DNA of 64,000 bases, from sequence record OR142618.1; one strand, given 5' to 3'. The notes under the pieces were generated by a model. That model worked only from the letters and a program-made list of their open reading frames with translations, ran no database searches and was not told the origin of the DNA. Positions 7,319 to 31,442 of the stretch are shown one piece after another; position 1 is the stretch's first letter; each line of letters begins with the position of its first letter. Position numbers and translations under genes: made by a program.

Positions 7319-7586
7319 ATTATTAAGAAACACTAGTAAAATCATACCGCGTGATGGTCTAAATGCTGCTAGATTTATTCTTGTAAATACCCATTATATA
7401 AAAATAGCATCTTTTTGTTTATTATTTTCTACATGGACCTGCCGTACATTTTTAAGTATAAACCAGTTTCAAATGTCAGAATCTACGTTAGTTATCATAT
7501 CTAATAAAATAAAGAAGATCAAAAGAGTAAAAAAATCATACGCTTTAGTTTTTGACGAATCATATATTCTGTTGAAAATCAAATGA
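7302..7586 (+). CDS. hypothetical protein (AT-rich array)
   Basis: 94-aa ORF with coupled overlaps. Confidence 0.55.
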   Translation: MNLLFELLRNTSKIIPRDGLNAARFILVNTHYIKIASFCLLFSTWTCRTFLSINQFQMSESTLVIISNKIKKIKRVKKSYALVFDESYILLKIK

Positions 7587-7837
7587 TAATACATATCTCA
7601 CATTTAACACATATAATAAATGCATATTCTAAATATATAATCGTCACTAATAAAGCTAATGAAATTATACTTTGCAATTACATATATAACCAAACTAAAA
7701 TTTACATTAACAAAGTATTACCAAGTATCGACTTAATCTGTTATATTCAACATAACACAAAAACTATTAGTTATCCCATTGTAAATAGCCATTTTCTATT
7801 ATATCCATATCTTTGCAATAATGCCTTGGTTGTATAA
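7583..7837 (+). CDS. small-ORF repeat-family protein
   Basis: MIIHISHLTHII ... LICYIQHNTKTI. Confidence 0.65.
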   Translation: MIIHISHLTHIINAYSKYIIVTNKANEIILCNYIYNQTKIYINKVLPSIDLICYIQHNTKTISYPIVNSHFLLYPYLCNNALVV

Positions 7838-7839
7838 TT

Positions 7840-8139
7840 ATGGATTTTATTTTCCTACTACAACATAACACTTCTATTATATTATATAATAATATATCAT
7901 ATGGTATTATAGAATTATACACAAAAGACGAAGTTCCAGTATTAGACATAGAACTATCAAGTTCTATGTACATATATCAAGGTAATTTTAATGACAAAAC
8001 TGCAATACTCTATCTACAGCAAAATACACACCAGATACAAATAGATATAGATCCATATAATTTTATTATAAAAATGAGAAACATGTACTATAAAGACATT
8101 TATTATATTGTATTACATGGATTATATGGATTATATTAA
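7840..8139 (+). CDS. small-ORF repeat-family protein, duplicate copy 1
   Basis: MDFIFLLQHNTSII ... AILYLQQNTHQI; paralog at 8206. Confidence 0.8.
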   Translation: MDFIFLLQHNTSIILYNNISYGIIELYTKDEVPVLDIELSSSMYIYQGNFNDKTAILYLQQNTHQIQIDIDPYNFIIKMRNMYYKDIYYIVLHGLYGLY

Positions 8140-8203
8140 ACTTATCTCCGCAGAAGTAAATCAAATATATCCATATCTTTGCAATAATGCCTTGGTTGTA
8201 TAA
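8126..8203 (+). CDS. chimeric 25-aa junction ORF (N-terminus of the 8474 gene fused to C-terminus of the 7583 gene)
   Basis: MDYIKLISAEVNQI + YPYLCNNALVV*. Confidence 0.55.
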   Translation: MDYIKLISAEVNQIYPYLCNNALVV

Positions 8204-8205
8204 TT

Positions 8206-8487
8206 ATGGATTTTATTTTCCTACTACAACATAACACTTCTATTATATTATATCGTAATAGTATTATAGAATTATACACAGAAGACGAAATGCCAGTAAT
8301 AGACATAGATATAACAAATTCTATGTTCATATATCAAGGTATTTTTAATGACAAAACTGCAATACTCTATCTACAACAAAATACACACAGTATAGGTATA
8401 GAATCATCAAATTCTTATTATATGATAAGAATGAGAAATATGTACCATAGAAACGTTTATTATATTATAACACATGGATTATATTAA
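8206..8487 (+). CDS. small-ORF repeat-family protein, duplicate copy 2
   Basis: MDFIFLLQHNTSII ... AILYLQQNTHSI. Confidence 0.8.
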   Translation: MDFIFLLQHNTSIILYRNSIIELYTEDEMPVIDIDITNSMFIYQGIFNDKTAILYLQQNTHSIGIESSNSYYMIRMRNMYHRNVYYIITHGLY

Positions 8488-8758
8488 ATTTATCTCCGCA
8501 GAAGTAAATCAAATTAAAAAATCCACCCACCCTGGCAGCACCCGCGACGGCTTAACACTATATAACGTACATGACCAACCTATAATAGAAATAAAGATCC
8601 AAAAAATAATATCCCGTGCATATGTGCGTGCAAACTACGATAAGTTGTGTAATGAAATCTGCATTCTTTATATACAAAGCCAAACAACTTTAATATCTAC
8701 CACACGGAACACACTAGTAATCTTTACTTCCCACTATATAGTTCACTCTATCACATGA
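8474..8758 (+). CDS. small-ORF repeat-family protein
   Basis: MDYIKFISAEVNQI ... ICILYIQSQTTLI. Confidence 0.7.
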   Translation: MDYIKFISAEVNQIKKSTHPGSTRDGLTLYNVHDQPIIEIKIQKIISRAYVRANYDKLCNEICILYIQSQTTLISTTRNTLVIFTSHYIVHSIT

Positions 8759-9045
8759 ACCTAATATATACACTACAACATAAAACTAGATATATATCCC
8801 AATTTGATACTAATTTTGATACTACTTATCGTTTAATTAACTCAGATAGAAAATGCTTTTATCTTATAACACGCAAGAACAAAAAGACCATAGTAGACAT
8901 AGACTATAATGTCTTTAATGATATTTTCGGTATATTACATTTACAGTCTAAAACACATATACTACAACGTTCATACTACCTAATAAAAATATATGATGCA
9001 TGTACGGATTTAATATTTTTTATATACCACCACAACCATAAATGA
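8755..9045 (+). CDS. small-ORF repeat-family protein
   Basis: MNLIYTLQHKTRYI ... FGILHLQSKTHIL. Confidence 0.75.
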   Translation: MNLIYTLQHKTRYISQFDTNFDTTYRLINSDRKCFYLITRKNKKTIVDIDYNVFNDIFGILHLQSKTHILQRSYYLIKIYDACTDLIFFIYHHNHK

Positions 9046-9323
9046 AATTTATTATAACATTACAATCATACACAACTACAATACAGTTTCTAACTAATGA
9101 TTTTATATTATATTCTGATAGAAATAGATTATTAGAATTAGGTATATACAATAACAAATTCAACTGTTACATACATATCAATAATTTTAATAATAACAAT
9201 ATAATCTTGTGTTATCTTCAGCATATAATTTATACAATACACATTCATCCCTTTGTTTTATCGATGTGTAATAGTAATTGGTTATCAGTTAATACAAAAT
9301 GTTATTCAAGAAGACTTTACTAG
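9042..9323 (+). CDS. small-ORF repeat-family protein
   Basis: MKFIITLQSYTTTI ... ILCYLQHIIYTI. Confidence 0.7.
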   Translation: MKFIITLQSYTTTIQFLTNDFILYSDRNRLLELGIYNNKFNCYIHINNFNNNNIILCYLQHIIYTIHIHPFVLSMCNSNWLSVNTKCYSRRLY

Positions 9324-9329
9324 ATCCGA

Positions 9330-9720
9330 TTAGTAATGAATGATAGAAATCACTATACTATAACTAATGAGTGATAATACTAATAGATAGCTATAATGAG
9401 TGATACTAATAGATATCAATACTAATACTAATATTGATAGATAGCTATAGTGTACAAATAATGAGTGAATTATATAGTACATATTTCGGTGAATACTGAT
9501 ATAATACCAATAGATAGTGATACTGATAGACATCGATACTAATACTGATAGATAGAAACTATAGTGTAACAAATAATAAGTGATACTAATAGAAGCTATA
9601 GTGTACAAATAATGAGTGATAGTGATAGTGTACAAATAATGAGTGATAGTGAGTGATACTAATAAGATAGTGATAGTGTACAAATAATGAGTGAATTATA
9701 TAGTACATATTTCGGTGAAC
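9330..9720. repeat. purine-skewed low-complexity tract of degenerate short repeats
   Basis: Reiterated tagtgtacaaataatgagtga and gatactaatagatagcta; tacaaataatgagtgaattatatagtacatatttcggtgaa occurs at about 9453 and 9681. Confidence 0.85.
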
Positions 9721-10000
9721 CCTAACATCACCGAAGAAAGAAGGACCAAAATTTTGGAAATCTTGCTCTATAGGTCCCATCCATTTTCTTCCCAGTTACA
9801 TTCATTTTCTTCCCAGTTACATTCATTTTCTTTCCATTTCTAACCATTTCTAACCATTTTTATAGATTTTTTTTGGAAAAATCCGTTTTCTGCTATATAG
9901 GGACCTTCTTATAAAATATAATCTTTTTCAATAAAAAATATTTTTTTTGAAAATTTCCAATTCTTGCTATATAGGCCGGTTTCATTATATATTCCCGTTT
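9720..10000. repeat. pyrimidine-rich tract with short direct repeats
   Basis: ttttcttcccagttacattca x2, ttctaaccatt x2, TTGCT(A/C)TATAGG-like x3 (about 9764, 9889, 9964). Confidence 0.7.
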
Positions 10001-10125
10001 GCATAACATATACGGAATATAGTATGCTATACGTATATAAACCGTGACTCTAGACAACTCACTTACTGTACGCTTGTTAATATAATTCCATTTCGTAGTA
10101 TAACGTATATACAGGACAACTAGTT

Positions 10126-10395
10126 ATGGATCTGATACTATTTCTTCAACATAATACTGTAGAGATGGACTATAGTGAATGGTACGTTCGTCTTAACAAC
10201 AAGAATGAAAAGCATATAGCTATGATTACAGGTAACGGTATTAGACTGTATTATAGAAATATTAATAGCTTACTTGGTATTCTTCATTTACAATACTGTA
10301 ATTATAAATTTTTCATGCATACGGACAATTATATTTCTTTTACTTTTGCTAATAATAATAGGTTTGTACATGAAATACATGTTGATTTGAAATAA
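10126..10395 (+). CDS. small-ORF repeat-family protein
   Basis: MDLILFLQHNTVEM ... LGILHLQYCNYKF; AGGA upstream. Confidence 0.75.
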   Translation: MDLILFLQHNTVEMDYSEWYVRLNNKNEKHIAMITGNGIRLYYRNINSLLGILHLQYCNYKFFMHTDNYISFTFANNNRFVHEIHVDLK

Positions 10396-10398
10396 TAT

Positions 10399-10716
10399 AT
10401 GGATTTCATACTATTACTTCAATCTCAATGTCATGAGATTGTATATACCAAACAAATTATTGATATGCTTAATGCGCATGATGATAGGCAGTTTGTATAT
10501 GGAATTACGTTGCCTATGGGGAGAAAACATGTGACATATAAGGCATATTGTTTGTATAATAATATATGCGATGTGATAGGTTTATTACATATGCAATCTA
10601 TTCTATCGTTAATAGAAGTTAAACATTTAAAATCAGTTTCTGGTAAAACAGATATTATTGTTAATATGGTGTTTGCTAACGATTTTCTTCAATATGCTAT
10701 ATATTTATGGACTTAA
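10399..10716 (+). CDS. small-ORF repeat-family protein
   Basis: MDFILLLQSQCHEI ... IGLLHMQSILSLI. Confidence 0.75.
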   Translation: MDFILLLQSQCHEIVYTKQIIDMLNAHDDRQFVYGITLPMGRKHVTYKAYCLYNNICDVIGLLHMQSILSLIEVKHLKSVSGKTDIIVNMVFANDFLQYAIYLWT

Positions 10717-10991
10717 TATTATTATTTCAGTCTCGTTGTTGTAAGATTTGGTATTCAGATTATATTATAGATATGATCGACTATAGTGATTATACTATAG
10801 TATCATTACTACGCCCGCCGAATGGGCGTATGTATGCCTATTGTTCGTGTAACAATATATACAACGAAATTAGTATAATGCATTTGCAGAATAGCATACA
10901 TTCATTACAAATAAGTTATAGTACCCGTTCTATAATGTGTCGTATGACTAATGTGTATGAAGATCTAATTCAATATATTAGTATACTTTAG
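10707..10991 (+). CDS. small-ORF repeat-family protein
   Basis: MDLILLFQSRCCKI ... ISIMHLQNSIHSL. Confidence 0.75.
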   Translation: MDLILLFQSRCCKIWYSDYIIDMIDYSDYTIVSLLRPPNGRMYAYCSCNNIYNEISIMHLQNSIHSLQISYSTRSIMCRMTNVYEDLIQYISIL

Positions 10992-10993
10992 TA

Positions 10994-11269
10994 ATGTATT
11001 TTATTTTGTTTATACAGAGATTGTGTTGTTCGATTAGAAGGGCTTCGCATGGATTCGATATTTTTGATACAAATGAAGTAGCATATTCATTAATAGATCA
11101 TCATGGTTTCAGTATGAAACATTTTGTTTCATACTCTGTTATAAACGATGTAATAGGAATTATACATTTACAAGTGCATACAAATAAGTTTTATTTTCTT
11201 AATGAAAAACATCAAATGGATATGATTTGTTTTCTAGATAGTAAAGGCGGTCATTTTTTTAGTTTATAG
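10994..11269 (+). CDS. small-ORF repeat-family protein
   Basis: MYFILFIQRLCCSI ... IGIIHLQVHTNKF. Confidence 0.75.
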   Translation: MYFILFIQRLCCSIRRASHGFDIFDTNEVAYSLIDHHGFSMKHFVSYSVINDVIGIIHLQVHTNKFYFLNEKHQMDMICFLDSKGGHFFSL

Positions 11270-11281
11270 AGGACGGAATTT

Positions 11282-11545
11282 GTGTTATTAATATTAATGC
11301 TTCAGCGTAATGTCGAATGGATTCTTTATACTGATTGTGAAATTCGACTTGTTCTGCCCGATTATAATACGTTATATCGTTTTCTAATTCAGATACAGAA
11401 AATTAATGGGTATCTAAATTGCCATGCTAGTAATGACATTGTAGGTATGTTTTATTTACAGTACAATTGTGATACTATATCATTTAATAGATTTGATGAA
11501 TTTATGATACTAAACCACAATGGCGTAATAATTTTTGGCTGGTGA
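11282..11545 (+). CDS. small-ORF repeat-family protein
   Basis: MLLILMLQRNVEWI ... VGMFYLQYNCDTI. Confidence 0.75.
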   Translation: MLLILMLQRNVEWILYTDCEIRLVLPDYNTLYRFLIQIQKINGYLNCHASNDIVGMFYLQYNCDTISFNRFDEFMILNHNGVIIFGW

Positions 11546-11841
11546 CTAGTATGGATATTATATTGATCCTTAGCAGTGAAGTTATAAGAATACAAGGTTG
11601 TTTTTATGATATAGAAACTTTACAAATAAGGTTCTTCAATAAATACGACTCAATATATTCTTGTAATAAAATGGGAGGATTTGTTAACTATAAAACATTT
11701 CCCAATGAACTACTAAGTATAATTCATTTGCAGCAGAATACACATAGGTTGATAACACACGGTAAATGTATATTTTTTGATAGTGTAGATTTTATTTCTA
11801 TTCACTGGGAGACTTTGTTTGACACAAACGAATATGTATAA
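11542..11841 (+). CDS. small-ORF repeat-family protein
   Basis: MDIILILSSEVIRI ... LSIIHLQQNTHRL. Confidence 0.75.
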   Translation: MTSMDIILILSSEVIRIQGCFYDIETLQIRFFNKYDSIYSCNKMGGFVNYKTFPNELLSIIHLQQNTHRLITHGKCIFFDSVDFISIHWETLFDTNEYV

Positions 11842-12085
11842 TGATATGAATTATATATTACTAATTAGTAACCAGTCTAAATATATTTCGTTGAAGGCAC
11901 TTGGATTAACTGTAAAAACACGTGAACCAAGGTTAACTCATTATATTATATTTTAAATATGAACGAAGAATATGATATATTATATTTGTCTAACAATACT
12001 ATGCAAATAACATTTCGTTTTTCAGTATATTGTTTTTATGATAAAACTCGTAGTATTATATATTGTCAATAAGACAGAAATATAA

Positions 12086-12400
12086 ATGGATTTAATATTA
12101 ACACTTCAGCATAAAACTGTGCTAATATCACAGTTTAGTGCATTATTTGTATTTCAAAATATAAACAGTGATACTATATTTTGTTTGGATATAAGTAGAC
12201 ATGTATATTATTTCGAAATAATATTCAGGTTATATAATAATAAGAATGGCATGGTGTATTTGCAACATGCCATTAATTCTATTAAGTTTACCTTTAGTTT
12301 ACAATATCATACAATTCGTGGATATTCTAGTATACCATCTATATATATGTATGATAAAAAATATGCTATTGTACACGTACCATATGTTAGGAATACTTAA
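12086..12400 (+). CDS. small-ORF repeat-family protein
   Basis: MDLILTLQHKTVLI ... NGMVYLQHAINSI. Confidence 0.75.
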   Translation: MDLILTLQHKTVLISQFSALFVFQNINSDTIFCLDISRHVYYFEIIFRLYNNKNGMVYLQHAINSIKFTFSLQYHTIRGYSSIPSIYMYDKKYAIVHVPYVRNT

Positions 12401-12699
12401 TGGATCTTATATTATACATTCAGTACAGTGCTCATAAAATAGAAACTGTTTATAAATCATATCTATTTTATAGTAATAACTATTCACTTTATTACAGACT
12501 GTCTGTATATAAGAGATTATTGGTACCATCGGGTAGTGAATCATATGCAAGGGCTTCGGCTGAATATTCTGCTATTACAGACAAAATAGGAATTATACAC
12601 TTACAATCGAAAACACACGCAATATTATTTGTTATAGACAGTATGTGCATTCACGACAAATCGTATCAAACACTCCATTATATTATACTAAGGTCATAA
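12400..12699 (+). CDS. small-ORF repeat-family protein
   Basis: MDLILYIQYSAHKI ... IGIIHLQSKTHAI; TAATG coupling. Confidence 0.75.
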   Translation: MDLILYIQYSAHKIETVYKSYLFYSNNYSLYYRLSVYKRLLVPSGSESYARASAEYSAITDKIGIIHLQSKTHAILFVIDSMCIHDKSYQTLHYIILRS

Positions 12700-12798
12700 T
12701 GTTTATAAGTTTTATTCCGCCTGTTGCAATGTTGATACGACTACAATCAAATCTACATATTATCTGTTTTGATTCTGTTTATGATAGTATAGTGTTTT

Positions 12799-13080
12799 GT
12801 GATAAAGACTACGACGAAATACATTGCTGCTTATGGTAGCGTGTTTGCATTTAACGCAAAAACATGTTATACAGTATTGTTTGTTGAGTATTTTGACATT
12901 GTTGTTTCTAAAAATCTTTTATATAAAGGATTAATATGCATAATATATTTAAATTATCATATTGTACAAATATGTTTAAATTTAAAATATTATGGGATCA
13001 AAAAGTATACCTATGCTCGTTTATGTCATTGCGGTATACTACCCTATATATTTCTGCAGGTCGTATCAGATAAATGGTAA
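12799..13080 (+). CDS. hypothetical protein (AT-rich array)
   Basis: 93-aa ORF; start uncertain. Confidence 0.4.
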   Translation: MIKTTTKYIAAYGSVFAFNAKTCYTVLFVEYFDIVVSKNLLYKGLICIIYLNYHIVQICLNLKYYGIKKYTYARLCHCGILPYIFLQVVSDKW

Positions 13081-14400
13081 CAAATATATTAGAATTAATG
13101 TATGTATGTCACCATACATATAATATAACAACTGACAGCTACTATAACATTTTCTTCTTAAATAAAAATAATAAAATTATCTTTGTTGTGTATTAAAACA
13201 AATGGGAATATTTCTCTTATCACGCAATACTTGCTATATTTGTGTTATACATGTCAGACGCATTGTATACAAGATTAAAATGTATGACAGACATGGCAAT
13301 TATGTGTGTACAATTAATGTTATCTAAGAACATATTAAATTATATAGAATTTGGTTGTATGTAATACAGTTTAATAATGGCAACAGATATTGATAAAATA
13401 ACATACATTTCATTTAACTCATGCTATATATCAGTTAATCGTTTTAGTGTTATTATATATTATGAGTACGGTAGATTGATTTTATATGATGATACCCCCG
13501 GGCTTATATAAGAACGTATTCTACATACAGTATAATGTACGTCATATCAGCATATATTATTTTGATGCATGTGAATGTAATATATTACAAGTAGAATGCA
13601 ATAATTTTCTTACTCTAACATATAAATTAAATGAAAAAACCAATAAGTAATATAGTTGAATTATCGCTTAATACGCACCGGTTTAATACCAATTATATAA
13701 CTAGTGCTCATTGTTTAGTATTTTATAATGCGTCGTCATATCCTATACATTATGTTCGTTTACACACAAACAAACGTTAACACTTATGTCGCCGGTATCA
13801 ATTCATAATATAGTTTGTATTCAACACTATCTTAATAGATGGTATACTAGAATATCCCCAACAGGTATTAATGTGTATTCAGATTCATATGTTAGAATTA
13901 GAATAAATGTTCATAAATAAAAATATTATAAATCACGATATACATTATGATATGTTGCAGGTATCTTCATGCGCACATACAATAGATTCATCGCTATGTA
14001 GTACATATCTATTGGCATGCATTTATAATAGTAATGAAAAAATTATTATAATTAGTGTTGCATATCTAAGATGAATGGTATAAAAGATATAATAGAATTT
14101 TCATCGCATGCATACGAAATATGTGCAAATACAGCAAGACTTAGAGATATAGTATACTACTCGATACTCATAAAGGCAAAAGACGGTCTTGCATTTTATA
14201 TGGTAGACTCGTTTGCATATATAACATGACCAGTATCCTTGAATGTTCTTACAATACTTCTAATATTAGGTTTCGTTTTTGTAAAAACAGTGGCATTTTA
14301 ATTGTGAACTTTCTAAACAAAAATGATGACATACATTTCATTGTAATAATTAGATACAAATATACATATCGTTAATTACTAATACATAGGAGAGTAATAA

Positions 14401-14535
14401 ATGAATAGAGCAGCAAAGAAAAATGTTTCTATATTTGTTATTCAGAATCATACTTTTAGAGTTCATGTTGTACGATATGATCCTGCGAGAATTTCAATAT
14501 ATCTCTCACTTGTACATAATTGTGTTGCATCTTAA
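14401..14535 (+). CDS. single-unit micro-protein, 44 aa
   Basis: AGGAG RBS; MNRAAKKNVSIFVIQNHTFRV... Confidence 0.6.
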   Translation: MNRAAKKNVSIFVIQNHTFRVHVVRYDPARISIYLSLVHNCVAS

Positions 14536-14643
14536 GAACTATATCTGTATAATGTAGGTTACATTTGCATGTATAGGATTATCTTTCATATAATATATGC
14601 TTATTAACTATACGACATGTATTGAATTACTTTATAGTATTGT

Positions 14644-14790
14644 ATGATTCGTAAAAATATAGTTCTAATATCACATAACACGTCAAAAATAATATTAGAA
14701 AGAAGAACAAGCAAAGTATTACGTGTTTCTATATTTAAATCAATCGGAAAATACTACTACCATTATTATACAACGTGTGGGAAACTATAA
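14644..14790 (+). CDS. single-unit micro-protein, 48 aa
   Basis: MIRKNIVLISHNTSKII...; TAATG-coupled to next ORF. Confidence 0.55.
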   Translation: MIRKNIVLISHNTSKIILERRTSKVLRVSIFKSIGKYYYHYYTTCGKL

Positions 14791-14930
14791 TGCAAGATCA
14801 TCATTTCACTACACTGTTGTATATGTCTAATCGTGCAGATAGAATAAAGATTTTTCGACAGCCTTCCTGTCTTATTGTATATATTAAGTCAGGTATGTTA
14901 TATATTAATAAACAATTCTTAAAATGTTAG
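14790..14930 (+). CDS. single-unit micro-protein, 46 aa
   Basis: MQDHHFTTLLYMSNRADRI... Confidence 0.55.
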   Translation: MQDHHFTTLLYMSNRADRIKIFRQPSCLIVYIKSGMLYINKQFLKC

Positions 14931-15700
14931 AATATATAGATACTCTCAAATATAATTACATTTTAACTGTATGCAGCGGTGTAGAGTCTATATCATTTGA
15001 ATCATTTACTAGATCAGTAATATCAGTTTCCATAATATATAATAATATTACTATCTTTCCGTACCAAACTACACGAACTATACTGTATGGTGTATAATCT
15101 TATTTTTATTTCTTGTAATGTTTCTTTAATTAGTTTTTCTATTTTTAATAAAACATTTGAAGTTTATATTTATGGAAAAATGTTAGTGGTAATTTATTGT
15201 ACAGGACTACATATATGTTAGATATATTGCTACAGTTCCAACGCAGGGTGGATACAATTAAGATGGAGTTAATGTGGCGTCACTTGCATTTTTATGAAAA
15301 AGCCGGCGAGGAAATTGAGTTATTTCATGCTATATTTCTGCCGCCCGATCACCGAAGTATTAATTAATAAAATTCTATAACAAAAACAAGTTGTATTTTT
15401 CGGCATAAAAATTTATGAATAAAGATACAAACAAAGAATCACCTATTATTAAAGAATTATATTTTATATTAAGATTGTAAGTAAAATAAAATACTTTTAG
15501 AATCTAAAACTAAAATGATCGATTGGGTATTTAAATTGTCTGCTAGTTGCTACGAAATAGACGGACAACACAGTGAGTCAATAAGAATATATAATTCATA
15601 TTGTCTTTTAGGAACTATACAATGTTATTGTGCTCAGTTAAAAATAAATTTATATAAATTTTAATATTGTGGGAAGAATTCTTTTAAATAGGCATACTAT

Positions 15701-15844
15701 ATGAATGATCTATTACAATATCAACTCACATTATGTTCCATATCTTTGCAGAAAGCTCGTTTTAAGTCAGGCAATGTGTATTACATTCTAATTGAACGTA
15801 ACGACAGCGGTAGGTATTCCCGAGATGTAAAAATACTTAAATGA
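15701..15844 (+). CDS. micro-protein, 47 aa
   Basis: MNDLLQYQLTLCSI... Confidence 0.45.
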   Translation: MNDLLQYQLTLCSISLQKARFKSGNVYYILIERNDSGRYSRDVKILK

Positions 15845-15845
15845 T

Positions 15846-16016
15846 ATGCGTATATTTGTAATATCACAAAATTGCATGACTATCAGACTTTTTTATCATA
15901 CATATTTCATTAAAGATGTAAATTATGATTCAATTTGTGTGTTATATAAAACGAATAGCAGAATTGTAATACATCCGAGTTTTACAGTAGATGAATATAT
16001 TCGATCTGTCTTATAA
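15846..16016 (+). CDS. single-unit micro-protein, 56 aa
   Basis: MRIFVISQNCMTI... Confidence 0.55.
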   Translation: MRIFVISQNCMTIRLFYHTYFIKDVNYDSICVLYKTNSRIVIHPSFTVDEYIRSVL

Positions 16017-16179
16017 TTCTTCATTTATTTTGATGAAATCGAATAGAATATACATTAGTAATAATATCTATCGTGTAGGAGCTATATATGTATTACCTGC
16101 AATAACGAAATATATACATCAAATATTCTATGTAAACGCTGCAATATATAGATTTTTAGATACAGGTATACTAGTATGA
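15991..16179 (+). CDS. single-unit micro-protein
   Basis: MNIFDLSYNSSFI. Confidence 0.55.
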   Translation: MNIFDLSYNSSFILMKSNRIYISNNIYRVGAIYVLPAITKYIHQIFYVNAAIYRFLDTGILV

Positions 16180-16364
16180 AATTCAATATATTTAAATTGC
16201 AAAGAAGATGTCACATTATAAATTGTCATTTTTATGACATTCTTAGATTTTCAAAACCTACATATTTTCGAGATGCTGATAGAATAACTATATTTTCATT
16301 AATAGGTACTAATAGTATCAGAATTTACGAGGATATGTATAAAGGATATGCACAAACCATATGA
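16176..16364 (+). CDS. single-unit micro-protein
   Basis: MKFNIFKLQRRCHII; ATGA overlap. Confidence 0.55.
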   Translation: MKFNIFKLQRRCHIINCHFYDILRFSKPTYFRDADRITIFSLIGTNSIRIYEDMYKGYAQTI

Positions 16365-16672
16365 TTGAAATATTAATATTTTCGAGTGTTAGTGATTATA
16401 TTAATATAAGCCACGATATGGCACGGCTATATAATCTTAATGGTGTTAGTGAATTAATATTTGCATCAAAACCATACAAGTATATTATATTAACTAATTT
16501 AAAAAATCGTATAGGTATATTCTGTATTTCAAATATAATAAGTGAAAGGGTGATGGGAGATATTACTAGTAATGAATGTTGGGCTTATCCTTGGCCTCCA
16601 GATACTGGCATAGATGTATATATTGATTTCCTGTATAAAAATGATGAGCTTTCTACTAAACACACAATATAA
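16361..16672 (+). CDS. small-ORF repeat-family protein
   Basis: ILIFSSVSDYI ... IFCISNIISERV. Confidence 0.6.
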   Translation: MIEILIFSSVSDYINISHDMARLYNLNGVSELIFASKPYKYIILTNLKNRIGIFCISNIISERVMGDITSNECWAYPWPPDTGIDVYIDFLYKNDELSTKHTI

Positions 16673-16709
16673 CCATAGACAAATAAGTGCATTATGCTAA
16701 TATATACAT

Positions 16710-17110
16710 GCTTACTAAACAGTTACTTGTTAAGTAAGTTAAAAAGTCGGTAACAGTGATGTTACAGGATACACAGGCAAATACGGTTGGAAGATGCTGT
16801 GTAAAGAACAAATATCCAGCTCATTCCTAGGCATTATAGCCTACACATTATATTTGAATGGGCATAAAAACTTCCAAAGAACCTTCGAAATTTTCTCATA
16901 GGATAGTGTATTAGAAGGAATGCACTATCAGGAAGCTGTAGGTGATGGTTGCTATCCCAGACAGTCCTTTCTAAAATACTTTAATATGATATAAAGTTCT
17001 ATGCAACCGTATACATGCTGTAAGATATTAGATTACACCATGTATTAAACGTAAAAGCAAAACCTTCAGTTAGTAATCTCGCAGTGAAGGGGGTAGGTGA
17101 GTGCTACCCA
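16710..17110 (+). ncRNA. putative large structured RNA or 5' leader (ncRNA-1)
   Basis: ORF-free; upstream TAGACA and extended TGcTAATAT; multiple helices with G-U pairs (see findings). Confidence 0.6.
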
Positions 17111-17152
17111 AACTCAACAAACAACTAATGGTCTAGAAAAGGTATAGTATAC

Positions 17153-17560
17153 ATGCAACATACTCACATTCGTTTCTACAACGAAGAAACTCAACAGATC
17201 GATAACCGCCGTGGCGCTACTGTTGCCTGGGAAACCGCCGGCAACAAGATCCGTATTTCCGTAGCAGCATGTTCGGAAATGGATAACTTCAACCGCAAGA
17301 CCGGACGTGAACATGCTGCTAGCCGTCTCGAAAGTGGCGACTACATCGAGTTTAACGGCACCGAACTTCTTAATGCACAGATGTCTTCTGTAAGTCATGT
17401 GCAGTCTGAAGGTCTCGTTCGTGCTATGTGCTTCTTGCTAGCACAAGGCAAAGGCGATCTATATTACCCGGCAAGCGAAGGTCAGCTTCGCAGCGAAGCC
17501 GAGTGCAATAGCTACAACGCCCTCGAGTACCTGAAACACCAGATGGGCATTCATCAGTAA
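17153..17560 (+). CDS. hypothetical protein, host-like codon usage
   Basis: 135 aa, GC-richer; phage-type motif ACSEMDNFNRKTGREHAASRL. Confidence 0.8.
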   Translation: MQHTHIRFYNEETQQIDNRRGATVAWETAGNKIRISVAACSEMDNFNRKTGREHAASRLESGDYIEFNGTELLNAQMSSVSHVQSEGLVRAMCFLLAQGKGDLYYPASEGQLRSEAECNSYNALEYLKHQMGIHQ

Positions 17561-17573
17561 GTATTCGGCCATT

Positions 17574-17616
17574 CGGAATTGCGATTTAGGTTTTGGAATT
17601 CTAAATCGCAATTCCG
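17574..17616. repeat. perfect 16-bp inverted repeat, 11-nt loop
   Basis: cggaattgcgatttag / ctaaatcgcaattccg. Confidence 0.9.
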
Positions 17617-17801
17617 GTTTCCAAATTCAATTTTAGGCACAAACTCGGATCCGCATTTGCATTTTGCATTTACATTTTGTGTTCTGAGTGTATATGCAAA
17701 ATGCAATCGCGCATGTTGTCGATGCATTGGCTAATCTTTTATTTTTGATAGTTTAGAAAAGATTAAGAACAGAAACTATCTGTAAATTAATAAAAATAAC
17801 A

Positions 17802-17830
17802 TTTACATTACATACACATATGCATATACT
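17802..17830 (+). promoter_or_regulatory. sigma70-type promoter
   Basis: TTTACA-17-TATACT with A-rich upstream sequence. Confidence 0.7.
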
Positions 17831-17836
17831 ATATAT

Positions 17837-18115
17837 AAGTTATGCGCTGTTGCATACGTAAATACCTCCTATGTTGTTTAGATATGTCGATTCTGGTATA
17901 ACCAGATAGACCTAAGGATGATGCTAGTGATTCCTTAGTATTGTATATTCTAGCTGAGTATAAAGAGTAAGGGGCTTTATACAAATAACAATTCCTTAGG
18001 CAAGATATACCGCTCCGTTGTGCTGACGAGCATAATTTGCCCAGATACAGAGCACGTGACTGGTCTGAGGAGCATTTATATCAGAAAGGCAGACTTATGT
18101 TTGCCTTTCTTTTTG
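17837..18115 (+). ncRNA. putative small RNA (ncRNA-2)
   Basis: Lies between a promoter and an intrinsic terminator, has no credible ORF, forms several hairpins and carries ACCUCCU near the 5' end. Confidence 0.6.
18084..18115 (+). terminator. intrinsic terminator
   Basis: gaaaggcagac-ttat-gtttgcctttc followed by T-tract. Confidence 0.8.
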
Positions 18116-18129
18116 AGCAGATATTCTCT

Positions 18130-18300
18130 TATTCACTTCCTTATTCATTTCTTTATTCATCTCTATTTCGTTTGTCACTTCCTTATTCATTTCTTTATTC
18201 ATCTCTATTTCATTTGTTATTGCAAATAAGACTAATTCTTATTTGCGTTTGTAATTTCATTTGTTATTGCAAATAAGACTAATTCGTATTTGCATTTGCA
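18130..18300. repeat. pyrimidine-rich direct repeats
   Basis: cttccttattcatttctttattcatctct x2; catttgttattgcaaataagactaattc x2. Confidence 0.85.
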
Positions 18301-18513
18301 ACGAAAAAGAATATGCAAATAATAACTAATCTTATTTGCATTTGCACTGCCTAGTATATGGATTGGTAGCATACTTGGAAATGGATAGTAAATAAGTAGT
18401 TGATTTGTTTATAAATTATACTTCTACACCATACAGATTGACCTTGCTATATATAGCTCGTGCGCGTGTATACAAGATGGTAAAAAATAATTTAAAAATA
18501 TTTTAAAAAATGC

Positions 18514-18637
18514 TTGACTTTCCATTACTACGACCTTAAAGTGCGAACTGTAGACGCAGTGTGTAGAGCGCTACATAGTAAGCAACGCAGAAAGTAAACA
18601 AAAAATGCTTGACGCAATGCAAACTAGGCTCTACACT
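18514..18637 (+). promoter_or_regulatory. tandem sigma70-type promoters with A-tract UP elements
   Basis: TTGACT-17-TAAAGT (18514-18542) and TTGACG-17-TACACT (18609-18637), both preceded by aaaaatgc. Confidence 0.75.
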
Positions 18638-18720
18638 GTATACAAGCTTAAGGGGTAGGTGCCCCGAAAGTGTAGTAAGTAAACAACATAATCCTTCCAT
18701 CAGCTACAGAGGTATACAAC

Positions 18721-19425
18721 ATGTCCGTACATATCACTCGTCAACGTACCGACAAACAGCACGTCCTGGCACTGGCAATCAACGGCGTGGTCATCGGCCA
18801 GACCATGGCTACTTACACCACCCCGAGCAAGCGCACCTGGTCGGCGACCGCCGAAGTCGAACTGGCAGACGGCACTGTCGTTCAGTTCGAACAGAAGGAA
18901 GTGTTCAGCGCGATCCGCATCACCCGCGAAATCGAGCAGGCGCTCGACGGCAAGGAACTGGCGGCCAAGTACACCCCGGAACCGAAAGTTCCCGGGCAGA
19001 AGGGTCCGAAACCGCTCACCGACGAAAGCCGGCTCAGCAACGCGATCGCGATCGTCAAAGCGGCCATCACCCACACCGGCTTCGACGAAGCTACCCTGGT
19101 GTTCGACGGGGTCGACAAGGCCAACTTCGAGCAGAACAGCACCTCCGTCGGCAACAAGCTGCGTCGCCTGGGCTTCGTCTTCGAACTCGGCGCCGGCAAG
19201 GCGAACAGCGGCAAGGGCTTCCTGATCAACCGCAAAGCGCAGGCCGAGGCAGAAGCTGCCGAACGCAAGGCCAAGCGCGACGCCGAGAAGAAGGAACGCG
19301 AAGAAAAAGCGGCGGCTGCCAAGCGCGAAGCTGACGAACGCAAGGCCAAGCGTGAAGCCGAACGCGCCGAAAAGGTCGCTGAAAAGAACGCAGCGATCGC
19401 CGGGGCAGCGCAGGAAAGCAAGTAA
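18721..19425 (+). CDS. paralog A of a three-member GC-rich family; K/E/A-rich C-terminal tail
   Basis: Shared domain NGVVIGQ...TPSKRTWSA...EQKEVFSAIRITR; GAGG RBS; terminator follows. Confidence 0.9.
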   Translation: MSVHITRQRTDKQHVLALAINGVVIGQTMATYTTPSKRTWSATAEVELADGTVVQFEQKEVFSAIRITREIEQALDGKELAAKYTPEPKVPGQKGPKPLTDESRLSNAIAIVKAAITHTGFDEATLVFDGVDKANFEQNSTSVGNKLRRLGFVFELGAGKANSGKGFLINRKAQAEAEAAERKAKRDAEKKEREEKAAAAKREADERKAKREAERAEKVAEKNAAIAGAAQESK

Positions 19426-19494: not shown

Positions 19495-19731
19495 ATGTCT
19501 TTAACTATATTTTCTATATCAGCTAATTTGTATACAATAACTTGGTATTCTGCGCAACTGACACAATGGTGTTATATAGACATAATAACACGCGACGCTA
19601 ATATTTTTATAACCTATCCATTTTATAATAACATATTTGTATCTAAAATTAGTTCTAATACAATAATTGAAGAAAAAATTGAAGAAAAATATGAACACTA
19701 TATTAGAGATATGTCGTGGAATAAGAAATGA
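19495..19731 (+). CDS. hypothetical protein
   Basis: 78-aa AT-rich ORF. Confidence 0.5.
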   Translation: MSLTIFSISANLYTITWYSAQLTQWCYIDIITRDANIFITYPFYNNIFVSKISSNTIIEEKIEEKYEHYIRDMSWNKK

Positions 19732-22421: not shown

Positions 22422-22952
22422 ATGCTGTCGTAACAGCTACTTTGTTCCATTCACAAGCAGCTCTGTTCCATTACTGGATATTGGTAGTAGAAACTATCCC
22501 CATCGTGCCCACAGTATTGTTCTGTTAGAGACAGATTAAAACATACAAAAGTGGGTTATTTAAATTATGATTTTGGGTGCTGAAGTATAGTCGTTAGACA
22601 AGGATATGTCTAATGTTGCAAAGGACTATGCGAAACGTATTATATATCTTATCCGATATTAGATATGTAATAAAAGGATGAAGCTCTGGTAGAAACAGAG
22701 TGTAATTCTTGCTTGTATATCACACGGATATACAAAAGAATATACACACCAACTTCAGCATTGATGTAAATTTTCTAGCATAGGTATATAACATCGATGT
22801 TCCGGGATTCATTGGAAACAATGAGAGAATGATGTAATCTGAGGAAAAAGGTCCCCGCCTCGTCCATATTACGAAATGGTTTTGAGTACTTATGCCCTCG
22901 TCCTATATTGGCATATGGGTTTTATATTTCTCCCGTAATTACGGGAGAATAT
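22422..22952 (+). ncRNA. putative ~530-nt structured RNA (ncRNA-3)
   Basis: No ORF after a consensus promoter; long-range helix tgctgaagt/acttcagca, GAAA tetraloop, ends at a 22-bp palindrome. Confidence 0.7.
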
Positions 22953-23281
22953 AATTTCCTGAACCTACTTGGAAATGGACGCTTCTGCTGTGCTTCGCAC
23001 ATCATCTAAGGGCCTTCACCCTTACCGCTAAGAGCAAGAGCAAAAGCAATATAATTACAAATAAGAATTAATTATTGTTTAGTTTTATCGTAATGAATAT
23101 GAAGATAAAAACTAAACAATAATTCACATGTAGCGTTAGCTACTGTGAATATCTACTATAATATTAACCATATATGTATACAAGGGCATATTATGGCTGT
23201 TACTTGTTGACAGTTTGATATATGTGTTACACTGCATAAATCAAATGTACATTACAATGTTTTGATTATTAGGAACATACT

Positions 23282-24430: not shown

Positions 24431-24460
24431 AGAAAGGGAATTATAATTCCCTTTCTTTTT
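24431..24460 (+). terminator. intrinsic terminator
   Basis: agaaagggaat-tata-attccctttct followed by T-tract. Confidence 0.8.
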
Positions 24461-24579
24461 GGATCTATATTAGCAAATACTAATTAATCTTATTTGCACA
24501 AATTTAATCCTATTGTGTTTTCTATTTTGAAGTGCTACATTACATGTAGTTGCATAAAACTATATACAGGAGAAATGAT

Positions 24580-25131
24580 ATGTGCTATGCATGGGATATC
24601 AAAGACGGGGATGATATCGAAGTCGAAGCAGTTATGGATGAACGAAGCTATGAGTGGACCGGCAAGTTACGTATCATCCAGTATCGGATCCAAGATCGGT
24701 GGCGTGTTATTATCAATATAGTAGAATTTTGGAGTCATTCTACTGAAAGTATACTGAAAGAACTTGGTATAGAAGCTAAACACATTACTAAAGGATATGC
24801 CACACTTAGTATGGTTCGTTTCCCGGAGGTTGATTACCTATTTAGTGTAACACCCGATAATGCAGATTATGTAACTGTTAACCGCAGTGCAGTAGATATT
24901 TCTGACAGTTGGTTTGTTGCAAAAAACATAAAAGCAGTTATGTATCATTTGGGATCTGAAATCCAGATCACTCCGTGGTTTGTGCGTAAAGATAGTAGCG
25001 AGACAAATTTCAATTGTATTGATCGATTAGTAGCTCTAGTAAAAGAGAATACTGACGTTGACACGTATCAGTACATCAAGGTAGGTTGTCCTGAGGACAA
25101 GTCATTTTACTTTGCGTGGATAGACAAATAA
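24580..25131 (+). CDS. hypothetical protein
   Basis: AGGAG RBS 7 nt before ATG 24580. Confidence 0.8.
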   Translation: MCYAWDIKDGDDIEVEAVMDERSYEWTGKLRIIQYRIQDRWRVIINIVEFWSHSTESILKELGIEAKHITKGYATLSMVRFPEVDYLFSVTPDNADYVTVNRSAVDISDSWFVAKNIKAVMYHLGSEIQITPWFVRKDSSETNFNCIDRLVALVKENTDVDTYQYIKVGCPEDKSFYFAWIDK

Positions 25132-25220
25132 TTCGTTTGCTATACGTACTAATACGTTGTATACTGTTAGTACGTATAGCAAAAGTAACACATAACGTTT
25201 TGATTTAATGGAGCCCTAAC

Positions 25221-25514
25221 ATGAAAAAAGAATTTGAATCGCGGATTCGGACTCCCTCTCCGGCGCCAGCGCCCCGGACGCCCGATGTGTGCAGCGAGTG
25301 CAATGACACCGGGAAAGTCTATGACGAAAGCGGCGCCGGTCCGTGGAGTTGCTACGCCTGTACCGGTAACCCGGAGGTGATCGGCTACGCAAACGGCGAT
25401 GAGTTGGACAACATGCTGGATGACCGCACTGCTGTTCTCTCTCCAAGGAAGACCAGTTTTCACACCGTGCCAGTGTATCGACTGATCCACACCCAAAACA
25501 AAAGTTTTCAATAA
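25221..25514 (+). CDS. hypothetical protein with CxxC...CxxC Zn-ribbon, GC-rich
   Basis: CSECNDTG...CYACTG; GGAG RBS. Confidence 0.75.
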   Translation: MKKEFESRIRTPSPAPAPRTPDVCSECNDTGKVYDESGAGPWSCYACTGNPEVIGYANGDELDNMLDDRTAVLSPRKTSFHTVPVYRLIHTQNKSFQ

Positions 25515-25562
25515 AATCGATATGGAATTGGCCCTCCGGCAAGCCGGAATAGAGGTGAAGCC

Positions 25563-25772
25563 ATGAAGACATTTTTGAAGATGCTCGCATATTGCGTGCT
25601 TGGGACATCCATTGGCATTGCCATCAGCCAATGGTTCATCTTCGTCCTAGAGATGAGGCTTGGCGCCGTGCTCTGGTACATCGTTGGCCTTGGTCCTGTG
25701 CTGCTTGTGTTTTGCATTTTGGGCAGCTTCCTTCAATGGCTGATTCATAAGAACTTGGAGAAAAAGCAATGA
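25563..25772 (+). CDS. small membrane protein, GC-rich
   Basis: GAGGT RBS; two hydrophobic segments. Confidence 0.7.
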   Translation: MKTFLKMLAYCVLGTSIGIAISQWFIFVLEMRLGAVLWYIVGLGPVLLVFCILGSFLQWLIHKNLEKKQ

Positions 25773-25843
25773 CCGACCACGCAGAGCTGCGGAGGCTGGC
25801 TAAAGAAGTGATCCGAATTGAACGAAATGAGGATGCAGCATGA
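25769..25843 (+). pseudogene. 24-aa remnant resembling the N-terminus of Ead/Ea22-like prophage proteins
   Basis: MTDHAELRRLAKEVIRIERNEDAA*; ATGA-coupled on both sides. Confidence 0.45.
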
Positions 25844-26376
25844 GCATTGACTGGAGCAAGGCACCAGAGGGTGCGACGCACTACCAACCGGAATCACGTG
25901 GCTTCCATGCGGCATGGTTCCGACTTCAAGGGGGGAAGGCTCGCGAAATGTGGGTCGTGATACCCGGCGGTGCGCTTGAGCACATCATCGATCCGACTGT
26001 CTTCGACGAGAGCATGCAGAACCTGATCGCCCGCCCCGTAGAACCTGCCACCTGGAACGGCCAGGGCCTGCCGCCGGTTGGCCTGATGGTGGAGTGGAAG
26101 GCAGGCCTTGATCACGACTGGCAGCGCGTAACCGTGCTTGCCTACGCCAATGGCGACGCGTGGTTTCAGCCTGAGGATGGCCCGTCTTTCATCGTCGGCA
26201 ACCCGGCAAACTTCAGGCGTATCCGCACCCCCGAGCAGTTGGTCGCCGAGGAGCGGGAAAAGGCGATTAATCAGATGATTTCTGATGCTGGATACGTAGA
26301 TCCGAAGATTGGCACATTTGTGGCTATGCGCAATCTCTACGACGCCGGCTACCGGCGTCGGGAGGAAGGGAAATGA
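25840..26376 (+). CDS. Pseudomonas temperate-phage-type hypothetical protein
   Basis: MSIDWSKAPEGATHY ... WNGQGLPPVG ... RTPEQLVAEEREKAI ... LYDAGYR, a typical prophage-family pattern. Confidence 0.8.
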   Translation: MSIDWSKAPEGATHYQPESRGFHAAWFRLQGGKAREMWVVIPGGALEHIIDPTVFDESMQNLIARPVEPATWNGQGLPPVGLMVEWKAGLDHDWQRVTVLAYANGDAWFQPEDGPSFIVGNPANFRRIRTPEQLVAEEREKAINQMISDAGYVDPKIGTFVAMRNLYDAGYRRREEGK

Positions 26377-26639
26377 GCAGACTGACAGCTGAGCAAGCCC
26401 GTGACATAGCGCGAGCGAAAGACGATGTCGATACTATCCTCAACGACATCGCCAAAACAGCCGCAGAAGGAAAGTACGTGTACACTACCCGCGCCTATGG
26501 GTTCGGCACAGGCGGCGGACGGCGCAGCGACGCGATCCTCAAAGTGTTGCGTAGCCTCGGCTACGACTGTGCTGTGCATGCTGAGGGACGCCAGTCTGTT
26601 GACCTGTGGCTTGAAGTGAAATGGGGAGACAAGCCATGA
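26373..26639 (+). CDS. hypothetical protein, GC-rich
   Basis: 88 aa, ATGA-coupled, GGAAGG RBS. Confidence 0.75.
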   Translation: MSRLTAEQARDIARAKDDVDTILNDIAKTAAEGKYVYTTRAYGFGTGGGRRSDAILKVLRSLGYDCAVHAEGRQSVDLWLEVKWGDKP

Positions 26640-31436: not shown

Positions 31437-31442
31437 AAACAC

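Follow-up and report, generated by a model that had tools for sequence, protein, structure and literature searches.

The question raised by this locus is what kind of element fills the stretch ahead of gene 17153, which a preliminary description drawn up from the letters of the DNA had presented as a non-coding, doubly pseudoknotted RNA, and either as a riboswitch- or ribozyme-like leader or as a processed non-coding RNA (ncRNA). The DNA analysed, called the window below, is 64 kb long (record position − 186000 = window position) and is a 100% match to Pseudomonas phage Callisto, a PA5oct-like jumbo phage, while ten further PA5oct-like records (genus Wroclawvirus) match it at 96.7–99.7%. Phages of this kind are therapy candidates against Pseudomonas aeruginosa, with early genes that are for the most part unexplained.

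Locus and annotation

In PA5oct the counterpart of the region lies within the 39-kb terminal repeat. The high early transcription of this phage spans gp34 to gp105 and comes nearly all from the Watson strand (PMC7318152), and four ncRNAs have been published for it from RNA-seq (Lood et al. 2020, PMC7318152). The leader stretch matches none of the four; a 35-aa CDS was called there instead (EST35_0034, window 16794–16901), gp34 being the small CDS annotated inside the stretch, and ncRNA001 lies just 3′ of gene 17153, at about 17858–18093. Public annotation of the region is conflicting, with the 35-aa CDS in one record and a blank in others, and four records carry a wrong-strand (minus) ORF in place of gene 17153.

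A search for relatives gave only the 11 near-identical records in the phage collection, none in IMG/VR or the species genomes, a single near-identical contig in the JGI metagenomes and only four clusters in the 5.8-billion-protein index. There are no tRNA genes in the window or in the relatives, and no second copy or paralogue of the leader turned up in the window with blastn or with a covariance model.

Transcription of the leader and gene 17153

We placed Logan contigs of four RNA-seq runs on positions 15800–19300; these contigs are strandless and give depth at bin level only. Two of the runs contain PA5oct-specific variants (e.g. 16662 G, 17649 G). In these two, the summed contig depth is 2,000–47,000 up to 16735 and 0.72–0.90 million (X1) or 0.63–0.88 million (X4) in all bins over 16736–17554, which corresponds to a rise of about 20-fold at about 16725–16745 and a flat level across the leader and gene 17153. 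Past the gene the depth is 41,000–58,000 in 17555–17671 and 7,000–15,000 in 17672–17788, and it is zero at 18140–18256 and 18374–18490; the signal is therefore RNA and not contaminating DNA. The other two runs, from two unrelated studies, are of different isolates and low depth: of 15800–19300 one yielded only 16745–17366, and the second only 16781–17237 and 17895–18093 (ncRNA001). The first contig piece of both spans the leader–gene junction unbroken.

The flat depth and the junction-crossing contigs together indicate that the leader and gene 17153 form one very abundant transcript, and since the contigs are continuous from leader into coding sequence, the main species is not a leader RNA on its own. 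With high depth throughout the leader, transcription does not start only next to gene 17153. The + strand assignment follows from the gene, from the orientation of promoter and terminator, and from the published Watson-strand early transcription.

The depth jump lies just downstream of a promoter-like site (Table 1), whose hexamers are both invariant in 10 genomes. This site has a near twin at 19577–19604, with an identical −35 box and GCTAATAT as −10, and TAGACA −35 boxes are recurrent in the published PA5oct promoter table. That table, in which 76 nt were examined per listed locus, contains no gp34 or gp35 promoter, and the promoters that it does list for this phage are no more than about 76 nt away from their genes. 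The depth profile places the RNA 5′ end in the interval 16710–16745, and processing near 16740 could have generated it. At the hairpin downstream of the gene, depth goes from about 0.7 to about 0.05 and then to 0.007–0.015 million in the following two bins; the hairpin is followed by GGUUUCC, with a delayed rather than an immediate U-run. Both the promoter-like site and the hairpin agree with the depth profile, which places the ends within about 30 nt only. Second promoters were considered within the leader (TTGCTA-17-TAAAAT at 16949–77 and a weak one near 17046–76), for which the flat depth leaves a minor contribution.

That the stretch is an untranslated leader of about 440 nt, belonging to a monocistronic and extremely abundant early mRNA, is well supported, and we regard this identity as very probable.

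Coding potential and the product of gene 17153

The leader had been described as non-coding, and no ORF of at least 45 aa occurs over 16673–17113. The annotated 35-aa ORF is kept open in all ten genomes, with 4 of its 7 variable sites non-synonymous and no codon-position signal. GGAAG abuts its ATG without a spacer, and this ATG lies inside the pseudoknot described below. Among the distant relatives, L015 carries at a similar place a 36-aa ORF whose peptide is unrelated, and in L012 the corresponding position lacks an ATG ORF; we thus found neither purifying selection on EST35_0034 nor its conservation in relatives.

In gene 17153 itself, 13 of the 15 variable sites are third positions of + frame codons (silent), a pattern from which it follows that the minus-strand ORF of four records is wrong. 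Its product gives a confident AF2 model (pLDDT 91.9), and comparison with Pfam, PHROGs, PDB sequences, the Atlas, Foldseek and VIA-align returned nothing above noise. The top VIA-align rows for the model are dsRNA-binding domains, with Z up to 3.7, which is below noise and gives a lead only.

Secondary structure of the leader

The whole stretch folds modestly above chance relative to shuffles (z −2.7 on the + strand, −3.4 on the − strand). For 200-nt windows in the leader z is −2.0 to −2.5 (+) versus −1.5 to −1.9 (−), and in the upstream small-ORF coding DNA it is mostly at least 0. The predicted fold has about ten hairpins (Table 1), with pair probabilities of 0.8–0.99 for HP4, HP5, HP7, HP8, HP9 and HP10. 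All the helices of the preliminary description are present where it had put them, with standard pairs: gctcattc/gaatgggc, taggc/gccta, gatagtgtatt/aatgcactatc, atacatg/catgtat, ccttca/tgaagg and gggtag/ctaccc, as well as ggat/atcc (16767–70/16814–17) and acacag/ctgtgt (16771–76/16797–802), the last two with pair probabilities of 0.3–0.5 each. G-U pairs fit the + strand, as it had stated, and so do the A>G and C>U changes that occur naturally in stems; our scan likewise found no terminator-like site on the + strand ahead of gene 17153.

Table 1 Features of the leader and its transcript (window coordinates; HP, hairpin; PK, pseudoknot pairing)
Feature	Position	Strand	Basis or remark
Promoter-like site TAGACA-N16-TGcTAATAT	16676–16703	+	Consensus scan; predicted start near 16710
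HP1, 5′-terminal hairpin, 7+5 bp, from predicted +1	16710–16739	+	Pair probability 0.93
HP2, ctgtaac/gttacag	16746–16770	+	9/10 genomes
HP3, acacag/ctgtgt stem, 20-nt loop with ACGGUUGGAAG	16771–16802	+	Predicted stem 1 of pseudoknot
PK1 5′ strand UUGGAAG, in HP3 loop	16787–16793	+	Complementarity and relatives
HP4, two-tier, gctcattc/gaatgggc around taggc/gccta	16819–16863	+	Pair probability 0.81–0.97
PK1 3′ strand CUUCCAA, in conserved RAACUUSCAA	16871–16877	+	282 nt before start codon
HP5 (11 bp, 16902–16929) then HP6 (16930–16972)	16902–16972	+	Probability 0.98, 0.47
HP7 (16978–97), HP8 (17008–52), HP9 (17063–90), HP10 (17091–109)	16978–17109	+	Probabilities 0.80–0.99
Unstructured CA-rich tract and Shine-Dalgarno (SD) region	17110–17152	+	AAGGU near 17141–45
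Gene 17153, 135 aa (PA5oct EST35_0035)	17153–17560	+	Real protein gene
Putative terminator hairpin, 18 bp	17573–17617	+	−27 kcal/mol, z −5.8

The local fold of HP1 and HP2 has a z of −3.2. In Paride, C16720T keeps its HP1 pair as U-G, and Callisto alone has a G-A mismatch at 16749 in HP2. HP4, which would lie within loop 3 of the pseudoknot, has its natural variants in its loops and shows four compensatory pairs relative to L015. The HP5/HP6 zone contains one variable column in 16901–17000, and both L012 and L015 have two adjacent hairpins at comparable positions. HP8, which includes atacatg/catgtat and tgtaa/ttaca, carries a cluster of PAC2 variants (17024–33) in its apical loop, and A17068G keeps its pair as G-U. 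At the 3′ end of the leader, P(unpaired) is 0.85–0.90 for 17110–31 and none of the 52 columns of the CA-rich/SD segment varies; CA-rich tracts and AGGTATA-N-ATG are frequent in this phage. We found no SD-masking platform in this segment, whose CA-rich tract is predicted to be unpaired and whose SD is not engaged in a strong helix.

The helix 16805–16/16988–17000 has an A-U to G-C double change in Cassandra, with a probability of about 6% of arising by chance (3 candidate pairs, 2% each); it has a 6–7% probability in Callisto and belongs to the minimum-energy fold of Cassandra. Alternative folds with this helix, with the outer helix of the preliminary description, or with 16781–89/17004–12 come within 1–5 kcal/mol of the minimum, and because of these several alternatives the long-range architecture is not fixed. 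A further long-range helix between the 5′ end and the ribosome-binding site, given by RNAalifold, was discarded: the alignment had begun upstream of the predicted start, and with the start at 16710 its probability is 0.000.

Pseudoknot pairings and distant relatives

Both complementarities of the HP3 loop that had been read as a double pseudoknot exist in the sequence. PK1 (ttggaag/cttccaa) is 7 nt long with 7 Watson-Crick pairs, and PK2 (atacgg/ccgtat), first given as 6 nt, extends to 9 nt (ATACGGTTG at 16781–89 versus CAACCGTAT at 17004–12). As TTG is common to both, at most one of them can form over its full length at a time. Of all 13-nt windows, 30% have a 7-nt complement somewhere else in the leader.

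Word-indexed searches gave no match beyond the genus. We scanned 1.84 billion representatives by phmmer with the product of gene 17153 as query; the homologues by alignment are P0002 (41% identical), P0003 (41%) and P0004 (39%), followed by weaker N-terminal matches. The homologue contigs belong to three further phage lineages: L012–L014 (one phage), L015 and L016. Ahead of the gene there is an ORF-free gap of 935 nt in L012, of 875 nt in L015, and of all the 267 nt available in L016; downstream of it in L012 is a gap of about 1 kb and then a homologue of gene 18721. The leaders of these lineages share k-mers at chance level only. In the window, GGGGTAGGTG is common to the leaders of genes 17153 and 18721, where two copies versus 0.7 expected are not significant.

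The order and spacing of HP3, loop strand and downstream site are similar when counted from the start codon. In Callisto, HP3 is at −382, TTGGAAG at −366 and CTTCCAA at −282 (loop to site, 84 nt); in L015, HP3 is at −368, TTGCAAG at −352 and CTTGCAA at −256 (96 nt); and in L012, HP3 is at −379, TGCAAG at −373 and CTTGCA at −283 (90 nt). The L016 contig begins with TTGCAA at −267, with HP3 and the loop motif outside the contig. The HP3 stems are unrelated (ACACAG/CTGTGT, ACATATGCGA/TCGCATATGT and ATTCGG/CCGAAT, or GGCTG/CAGCC), and the loop motif is conserved. The loop–tail pairing is kept in the relatives, with six pairs invariant and one compensatory, the middle pair changing from G-C to C-G, and extends over 7 bp in L015 and 6 bp in L012. 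In shuffles, a complement as long as the observed one arises within 66 nt around −270 with a probability of 0.0175 (L015) and 0.049 (L012), jointly about 1e-3 for a hypothesis taken from Callisto. The predicted geometries for Callisto, L015 and L012 have a stem 1 of 6, 10 and 5 bp, a loop 1 of 10, 6 and 10 nt, a stem 2 of 7, 7 and 6 bp, and a loop 3 of 68, 78 and 73 nt with a two-tier hairpin; the PK1 duplex energies in the three lineages are −9.0, −9.3 and −10.4 kcal/mol.

Collinear alignment of the domain gives z values of 5.4 (Callisto–L015), 3.0 (Callisto–L012) and 2.3 (L012–L015); the remaining leader segments are mostly near chance, and the coding start reaches 8.6–18.9. Pairs with L016 give z 2.4–3.5 (P 0.004–0.024) in two ATG-proximal segments. 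From Callisto, Cassandra, PAC2 and L015, RNAalifold chooses PK1 and HP4. On an alignment fitted to the model, 94.8% of cells pair, and eight pairs change on both sides versus 1.6 ± 1.1 in shuffles (0/500) and 0–3 in slid controls, values that are to be read with the model-fitted alignment in mind. A covariance model from Wroclawvirus only scores no more than 11.3 bits (E 0.1) at the homologous place in L015, where another site matches slightly better, and models without L012, including one with L015, miss the L012 domain (E above 5).

For PK2, no complement is present at the equivalent place in L015 or L012, and G17009A in PAC2 breaks it, leaving an uncompensated C-A mismatch. Hence, of the double pseudoknot that had been proposed, PK1 is backed by the distant relatives and PK2 is not positionally conserved. 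The prediction that 16771–16877 forms an H-type pseudoknot domain of about 110 nt, in which the HP3 loop pairs with CUUCCAA 84 nt downstream and HP4 lies in the connecting loop, is well supported. The comparative support for PK1 as such is thin, amounting effectively to three lineages and one compensatory pair. This hairpin–hairpin–tail domain appears to be the only part of the leader that is detectably conserved in distant relatives.

Variation within the genus

Variable columns number 19 of 443 in the leader versus 22 of 238 third codon positions of two flanking genes, so that the leader varies less than half as often (Fisher p 0.011, or p 0.001 with the PAC2 cluster taken as one event). Eight of about 14 variation events fall in predicted loops or linkers and six in stems. 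Among the stem events, those at 16720 and 17068 keep the pair as G-U on the + strand, 16814 and 16990 can be read as one compensatory pair, and 16749 (Callisto) and 17009 (PAC2) break the pair. The pattern is consistent with an RNA structure on the + strand, and alone it is not significant.

Comparison with RNA classes

At gathering thresholds Rfam 15 (4227 models) has no match in the window, and with E up to 10 over 16300–17400 and up to 1 over the whole window nothing relevant was found. These results bear on the classes that had been proposed. A riboswitch is disfavoured by the lack of an Rfam match, by the flat leader depth, and by the finding of neither a terminator nor an SD-sequestering platform; next to the domain there is no expression platform, and the leader has no terminator-like site on the + strand. 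The leader does contain a conserved pseudoknot domain, for which ligand binding is only conjectural. The ribozyme proposal fares no better, since no Rfam ribozyme matches and the low-depth contigs cross the leader unbroken, and a processed ncRNA is set aside as the main species because the same contigs run from the leader into coding sequence. What holds of the proposal is its leader part: a structured + strand RNA, co-transcribed with gene 17153, with high depth from about 16736.

No YrlA-like or tRNA-like match (RF02553) occurs anywhere in the 64-kb window, and YrlA-like matches upstream of the L012 and L015 leaders are sub-threshold (45.9 and 44.8 bits versus a gathering score of 69). The possibility of a sponge for RsmA/CsrA or Hfq was also considered and rejected, as GGA, AGGA, ANGGA and (ARN)4 motifs are not enriched.

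Possible functions of the leader

The most likely role of the leader is that of a cis-acting stabilising or factor-binding 5′ domain. Transcription probably starts near 16710 from the host-type promoter at 16676–16703, and the RNA runs through the leader and gene 17153 to end at the strong hairpin 17573–17617. In the mechanism that we propose, the leader would act in cis. Its terminal hairpins, together with the compact pseudoknot domain, would shield the 5′ end from 5′-end-dependent decay and so contribute to the very high steady-state level, and the last 45 nt, predicted to be unpaired and CA-rich, would leave the ribosome-binding site open. Terminal hairpins and compact 5′ domains slow 5′-end-dependent decay in Gram-negative bacteria, e.g. 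in the ompA leader. A constrained leader of 440 nt is unlikely to be a mere spacer, because the listed promoters are within 76 nt of genes. We hold the stabiliser mechanism tentatively, as a possibility short of an even chance; the combined explanation, of an abundant early mRNA leader with a pseudoknot domain and a stabiliser in cis, we judge somewhat better than even.

In the main rival to this explanation, autoregulation or factor binding, the pseudoknot domain would be an operator or aptamer for a protein (e.g. the gene 17153 product) or a small ligand, and would control translation or decay. For the PK1 strands and for the loop motif A-W-N-CGG it is the sequence, and not the pairing alone, that is conserved, with the rest of the leader mostly at chance, and such conservation of both PK1 strands may fit a factor-binding site too. 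The domain also always accompanies homologues of one gene, for whose product in Callisto the model is without a known fold and has dsRNA-binding domains as sub-threshold neighbours (Z up to 3.7). However, the domain lies 280–380 nt from the ribosome-binding site, with many hairpins between, it has no adjacent terminator or SD-masking helix, depth is flat over the leader, no riboswitch family matches, and the more distant homologues of gene 17153, L017 and L019, are without the leader. We therefore regard an operator or aptamer as rather unlikely. A stronger form, in which 16771–16877 would be a phage RNA sensor or operator of a new class, aptamer-like and binding gp17153, a host factor or a metabolite, is unlikely; if true, the domain would adjust the output of the most abundant early message of the phage, or serve as a decoy against a host RNA-targeting system.

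An action in trans is more doubtful still. The leader, or a processed part of it, would then be an ncRNA that titrates, in the manner of a decoy or sponge, an RNA-binding protein, a nuclease or a defence system of the host, and the mRNA would have a dual function. Its abundance is similar to that of ncRNA001, itself 2.4–5% of phage reads, abundant or tRNA-like/YrlA-like ncRNAs surround the locus in all lineages, and there is the possible processed 5′ end near 16740; against this stand the equal depth of leader and coding sequence, the contigs continuous over the junction, the missing GGA or (ARN)n enrichment (RsmA, Hfq), and the lack of repeats or paralogues in the window.

It is quite improbable that the stretch is a spacer without function at the RNA level, its hairpins and complementarities arising by chance in a long gap between promoter and gene. 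The modest fold z, similar on both strands, the frequency of 7-nt complements (30% of 13-nt windows) and the non-significant covariance-model tests would all suit such a spacer, but the leader varies at under half the rate of synonymous sites, its variants are grouped in loops or leave pairs intact, the listed promoters lie close to their genes, and the domain keeps its position and sequence in lineages that otherwise share k-mers at chance level. Finally, that the stretch encodes small proteins, as annotated in PA5oct (EST35_0034) and PAC2, is very improbable: the 35-aa frame is open in all ten genomes and L015 has a similarly placed one, but the absent GGAAG–ATG spacer, the ATG within the pseudoknot, the replacement changes at 4 of 7 variable sites (versus 13 of 15 silent in gene 17153), the unrelated L015 peptide and the missing ATG ORF in L012 all speak against it.

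The leader and gene 17153 make up one of the most abundant early transcripts, and the conserved pseudoknot domain offers a defined, mutable element for studying high early expression by the host polymerase in a giant phage, as well as a candidate new family for RNA databases.

Relation to known systems

We place the leader as an uncatalogued addition to a known class, the structured mRNA leaders, with a pseudoknot domain that is absent from RNA family databases. The closest neighbours in the phage itself are ncRNA001 and ncRNA002 of PA5oct (PMC7318152), which like the leader belong to the early, terminally repeated region, are very abundant on the + strand, have no plausible ORF and have no database match outside the phage group. 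In contrast to the leader, which is joined to a protein gene, ncRNA001 has its own promoter-like site and terminator, and neither ncRNA has sequence similarity to the leader. Elements related to YrlA (RF02553; Chen et al. 2014, PMC4201824) appear, sub-threshold and with tRNA T-arm motifs, a few hundred nt upstream in L012 and L015, and the pseudoknot domain itself is unlike YrlA.

In its predicted architecture the domain resembles the preQ1-II/III, SAM-II, fluoride and ZTP aptamers, with pairing of a hairpin loop to a tail further downstream and a hairpin in the connecting loop. It differs from them in giving no covariance-model match at the thresholds tried, in having no expression platform and in showing no attenuation of depth.

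The leaders of T4 gene 32 and of E. coli rpsO (S15) contain a pseudoknot, at most tens of nucleotides away from the ribosome-binding site, that binds the gene's own product in translational autoregulation. The Callisto leader is similar in that it too belongs to an abundant mRNA and has a predicted pseudoknot, with binding by gp17153 only putative, but its pseudoknot lies 280–380 nt upstream, with seven hairpins between. The E. coli ompA leader has a 5′ stabiliser hairpin, and T7 has a long early leader between promoters A1–A3 and gene 0.3. With these the Callisto leader shares a hairpin at the very 5′ end, great length, an abundant message, the use of the host polymerase and a place in the first early transcript, whereas it is without an RNase III-type processing signal and has in addition the conserved pseudoknot domain.

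Strand and product of gene 17153

In the records of Paride, Cassandra, Deifobo and Ettore, PA5oct-like phages with near-identical genomes, a 94-aa minus-strand ORF is annotated in place of plus-strand gene 17153, along with further minus-strand ORFs at this locus. The codon-position pattern of variation rules out the 94-aa ORF as a real gene. The variation follows the codon positions of plus-strand gene 17153, which shows the latter to be the real gene. The AlphaFold model of its product is of high confidence (pLDDT 91.9, pTM 0.83), and comparison with the PDB and AlphaFold DB clusters returned no significant match. Its N-terminal, beta-rich part is common to about 70 small, uncharacterised proteins, mostly from phages.

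The leader in distant relatives

The contig L017 encodes a more distant homologue of gene 17153 (28% identity in the alignment) that has no leader, which indicates that the leader is specific to the closer lineages. Upstream of this homologue lie, in order, an element that by eye looks like a tRNA-Leu(UAA), a strong terminator hairpin and a proximal TTGACA promoter. In two other relatives, L012 and L015, the region upstream of the homologous leader contains tRNA T-arm motifs (GGTTCGAATCC) and sub-threshold matches to the Y RNA-like family YrlA (RF02553), which score 45.9, 22.5, 36.3 and 44.8 bits, whereas the family's gathering score is 69. ARAGORN called no tRNA in these regions, and neither YrlA-like matches nor T-arm motifs were found in the Callisto window.

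Surroundings of the leader

Upstream of the leader, over 25 tiny plus-strand ORFs (40-103 aa) form an array in DNA of 27% GC, with RNA depth far below that of the downstream region. Variation in its last ORF is 5.3% at codon positions 1 and 2 and 8.7% at the third, the first and second positions being nearly as variable as the third.

The window background of 26-30% GC is interrupted by GC-rich islands; genes 17153 and 18721 both form such islands and are both very highly expressed. The sequence GGGGTAGGTG opens a short hairpin 63 nt before the start codon of gene 17153 and 69 nt before that of gene 18721; its two copies, against 0.7 expected, are not significant alone. A similar hairpin (GTAGTG-TAGGTGC-CACTAC) is found at about -50 in the relative L016.

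Downstream of gene 17153, a homologue of PA5oct ncRNA001 reaches a depth of about 1 million in RNA-seq contigs, and part of it forms a contig of its own in an unrelated RNA-seq study. Pyrimidine-rich direct repeats (cttattcatttctttattcatctctatttc) sit between it and a tandem array of palindromic repeats, a family with the core TTGCAAATAAGACTAATTCTTATTTGCA that is dispersed through the window. RNA depth around the palindromes is close to 0. Possible roles for these repeats are as terminators or as hot spots of recombination between gene cassettes.

Features of the window and of three relatives' contigs (z, fold energy versus shuffled sequence)
Feature	Location	Position	Detail
Tiny-ORF array	window	12800-16672	
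Last ORF of array	window	16361-16672	
GGGGTAGGTG copies	window	17090-17099, 18652-18661	
94-aa ORF	window	17114-17398	minus strand
Gene 17153, product	window	17153-17557	plus strand
GC-rich islands	window	17153-17560, 18721-19425, 25000-28000, others	~50%, 62%, 50-55% GC
ncRNA001 homologue	window	17802-18113	
Its promoter-like site	window	17802-17830	TTTACA-17-TATACT
Its separate contig	window	17895-18093	
Its 12-bp hairpin and U-run	window	18083-18113	z -5.1
Direct repeats	window	18118-18215	unit ~30 nt
Palindromic repeats, tandem array	window	18221-18345	
Palindromic repeats, copies near	window	24453-24498, 28628-28662, 31941-31968, 36867-36975, 37908-37931, 39505-39570, 41671-41704, 43355-43382, 44994-45026	
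ORF-free stretch	window	22540-23281	742 nt; z -5.0, -1.7, -3.7 across three parts
ORF-free stretch	window	31384-31707	z -3.9
YrlA-like matches/T-arm motifs	L012	737-838, 1270-1373	
YrlA-like matches/T-arm motifs	L015	769-836, 1137-1240, 1503-1520	
Putative tRNA-Leu(UAA)	L017	~1897-1985	
Terminator hairpin	L017	2371-2405	
Proximal promoter	L017	2431-2460	TTGACA

Two more stretches without ORFs give strong fold signals and may be additional structured leaders or ncRNAs; the second falls in the same area as ncRNA002 of PA5oct, which, like ncRNA001, is a published abundant non-coding RNA of that phage.
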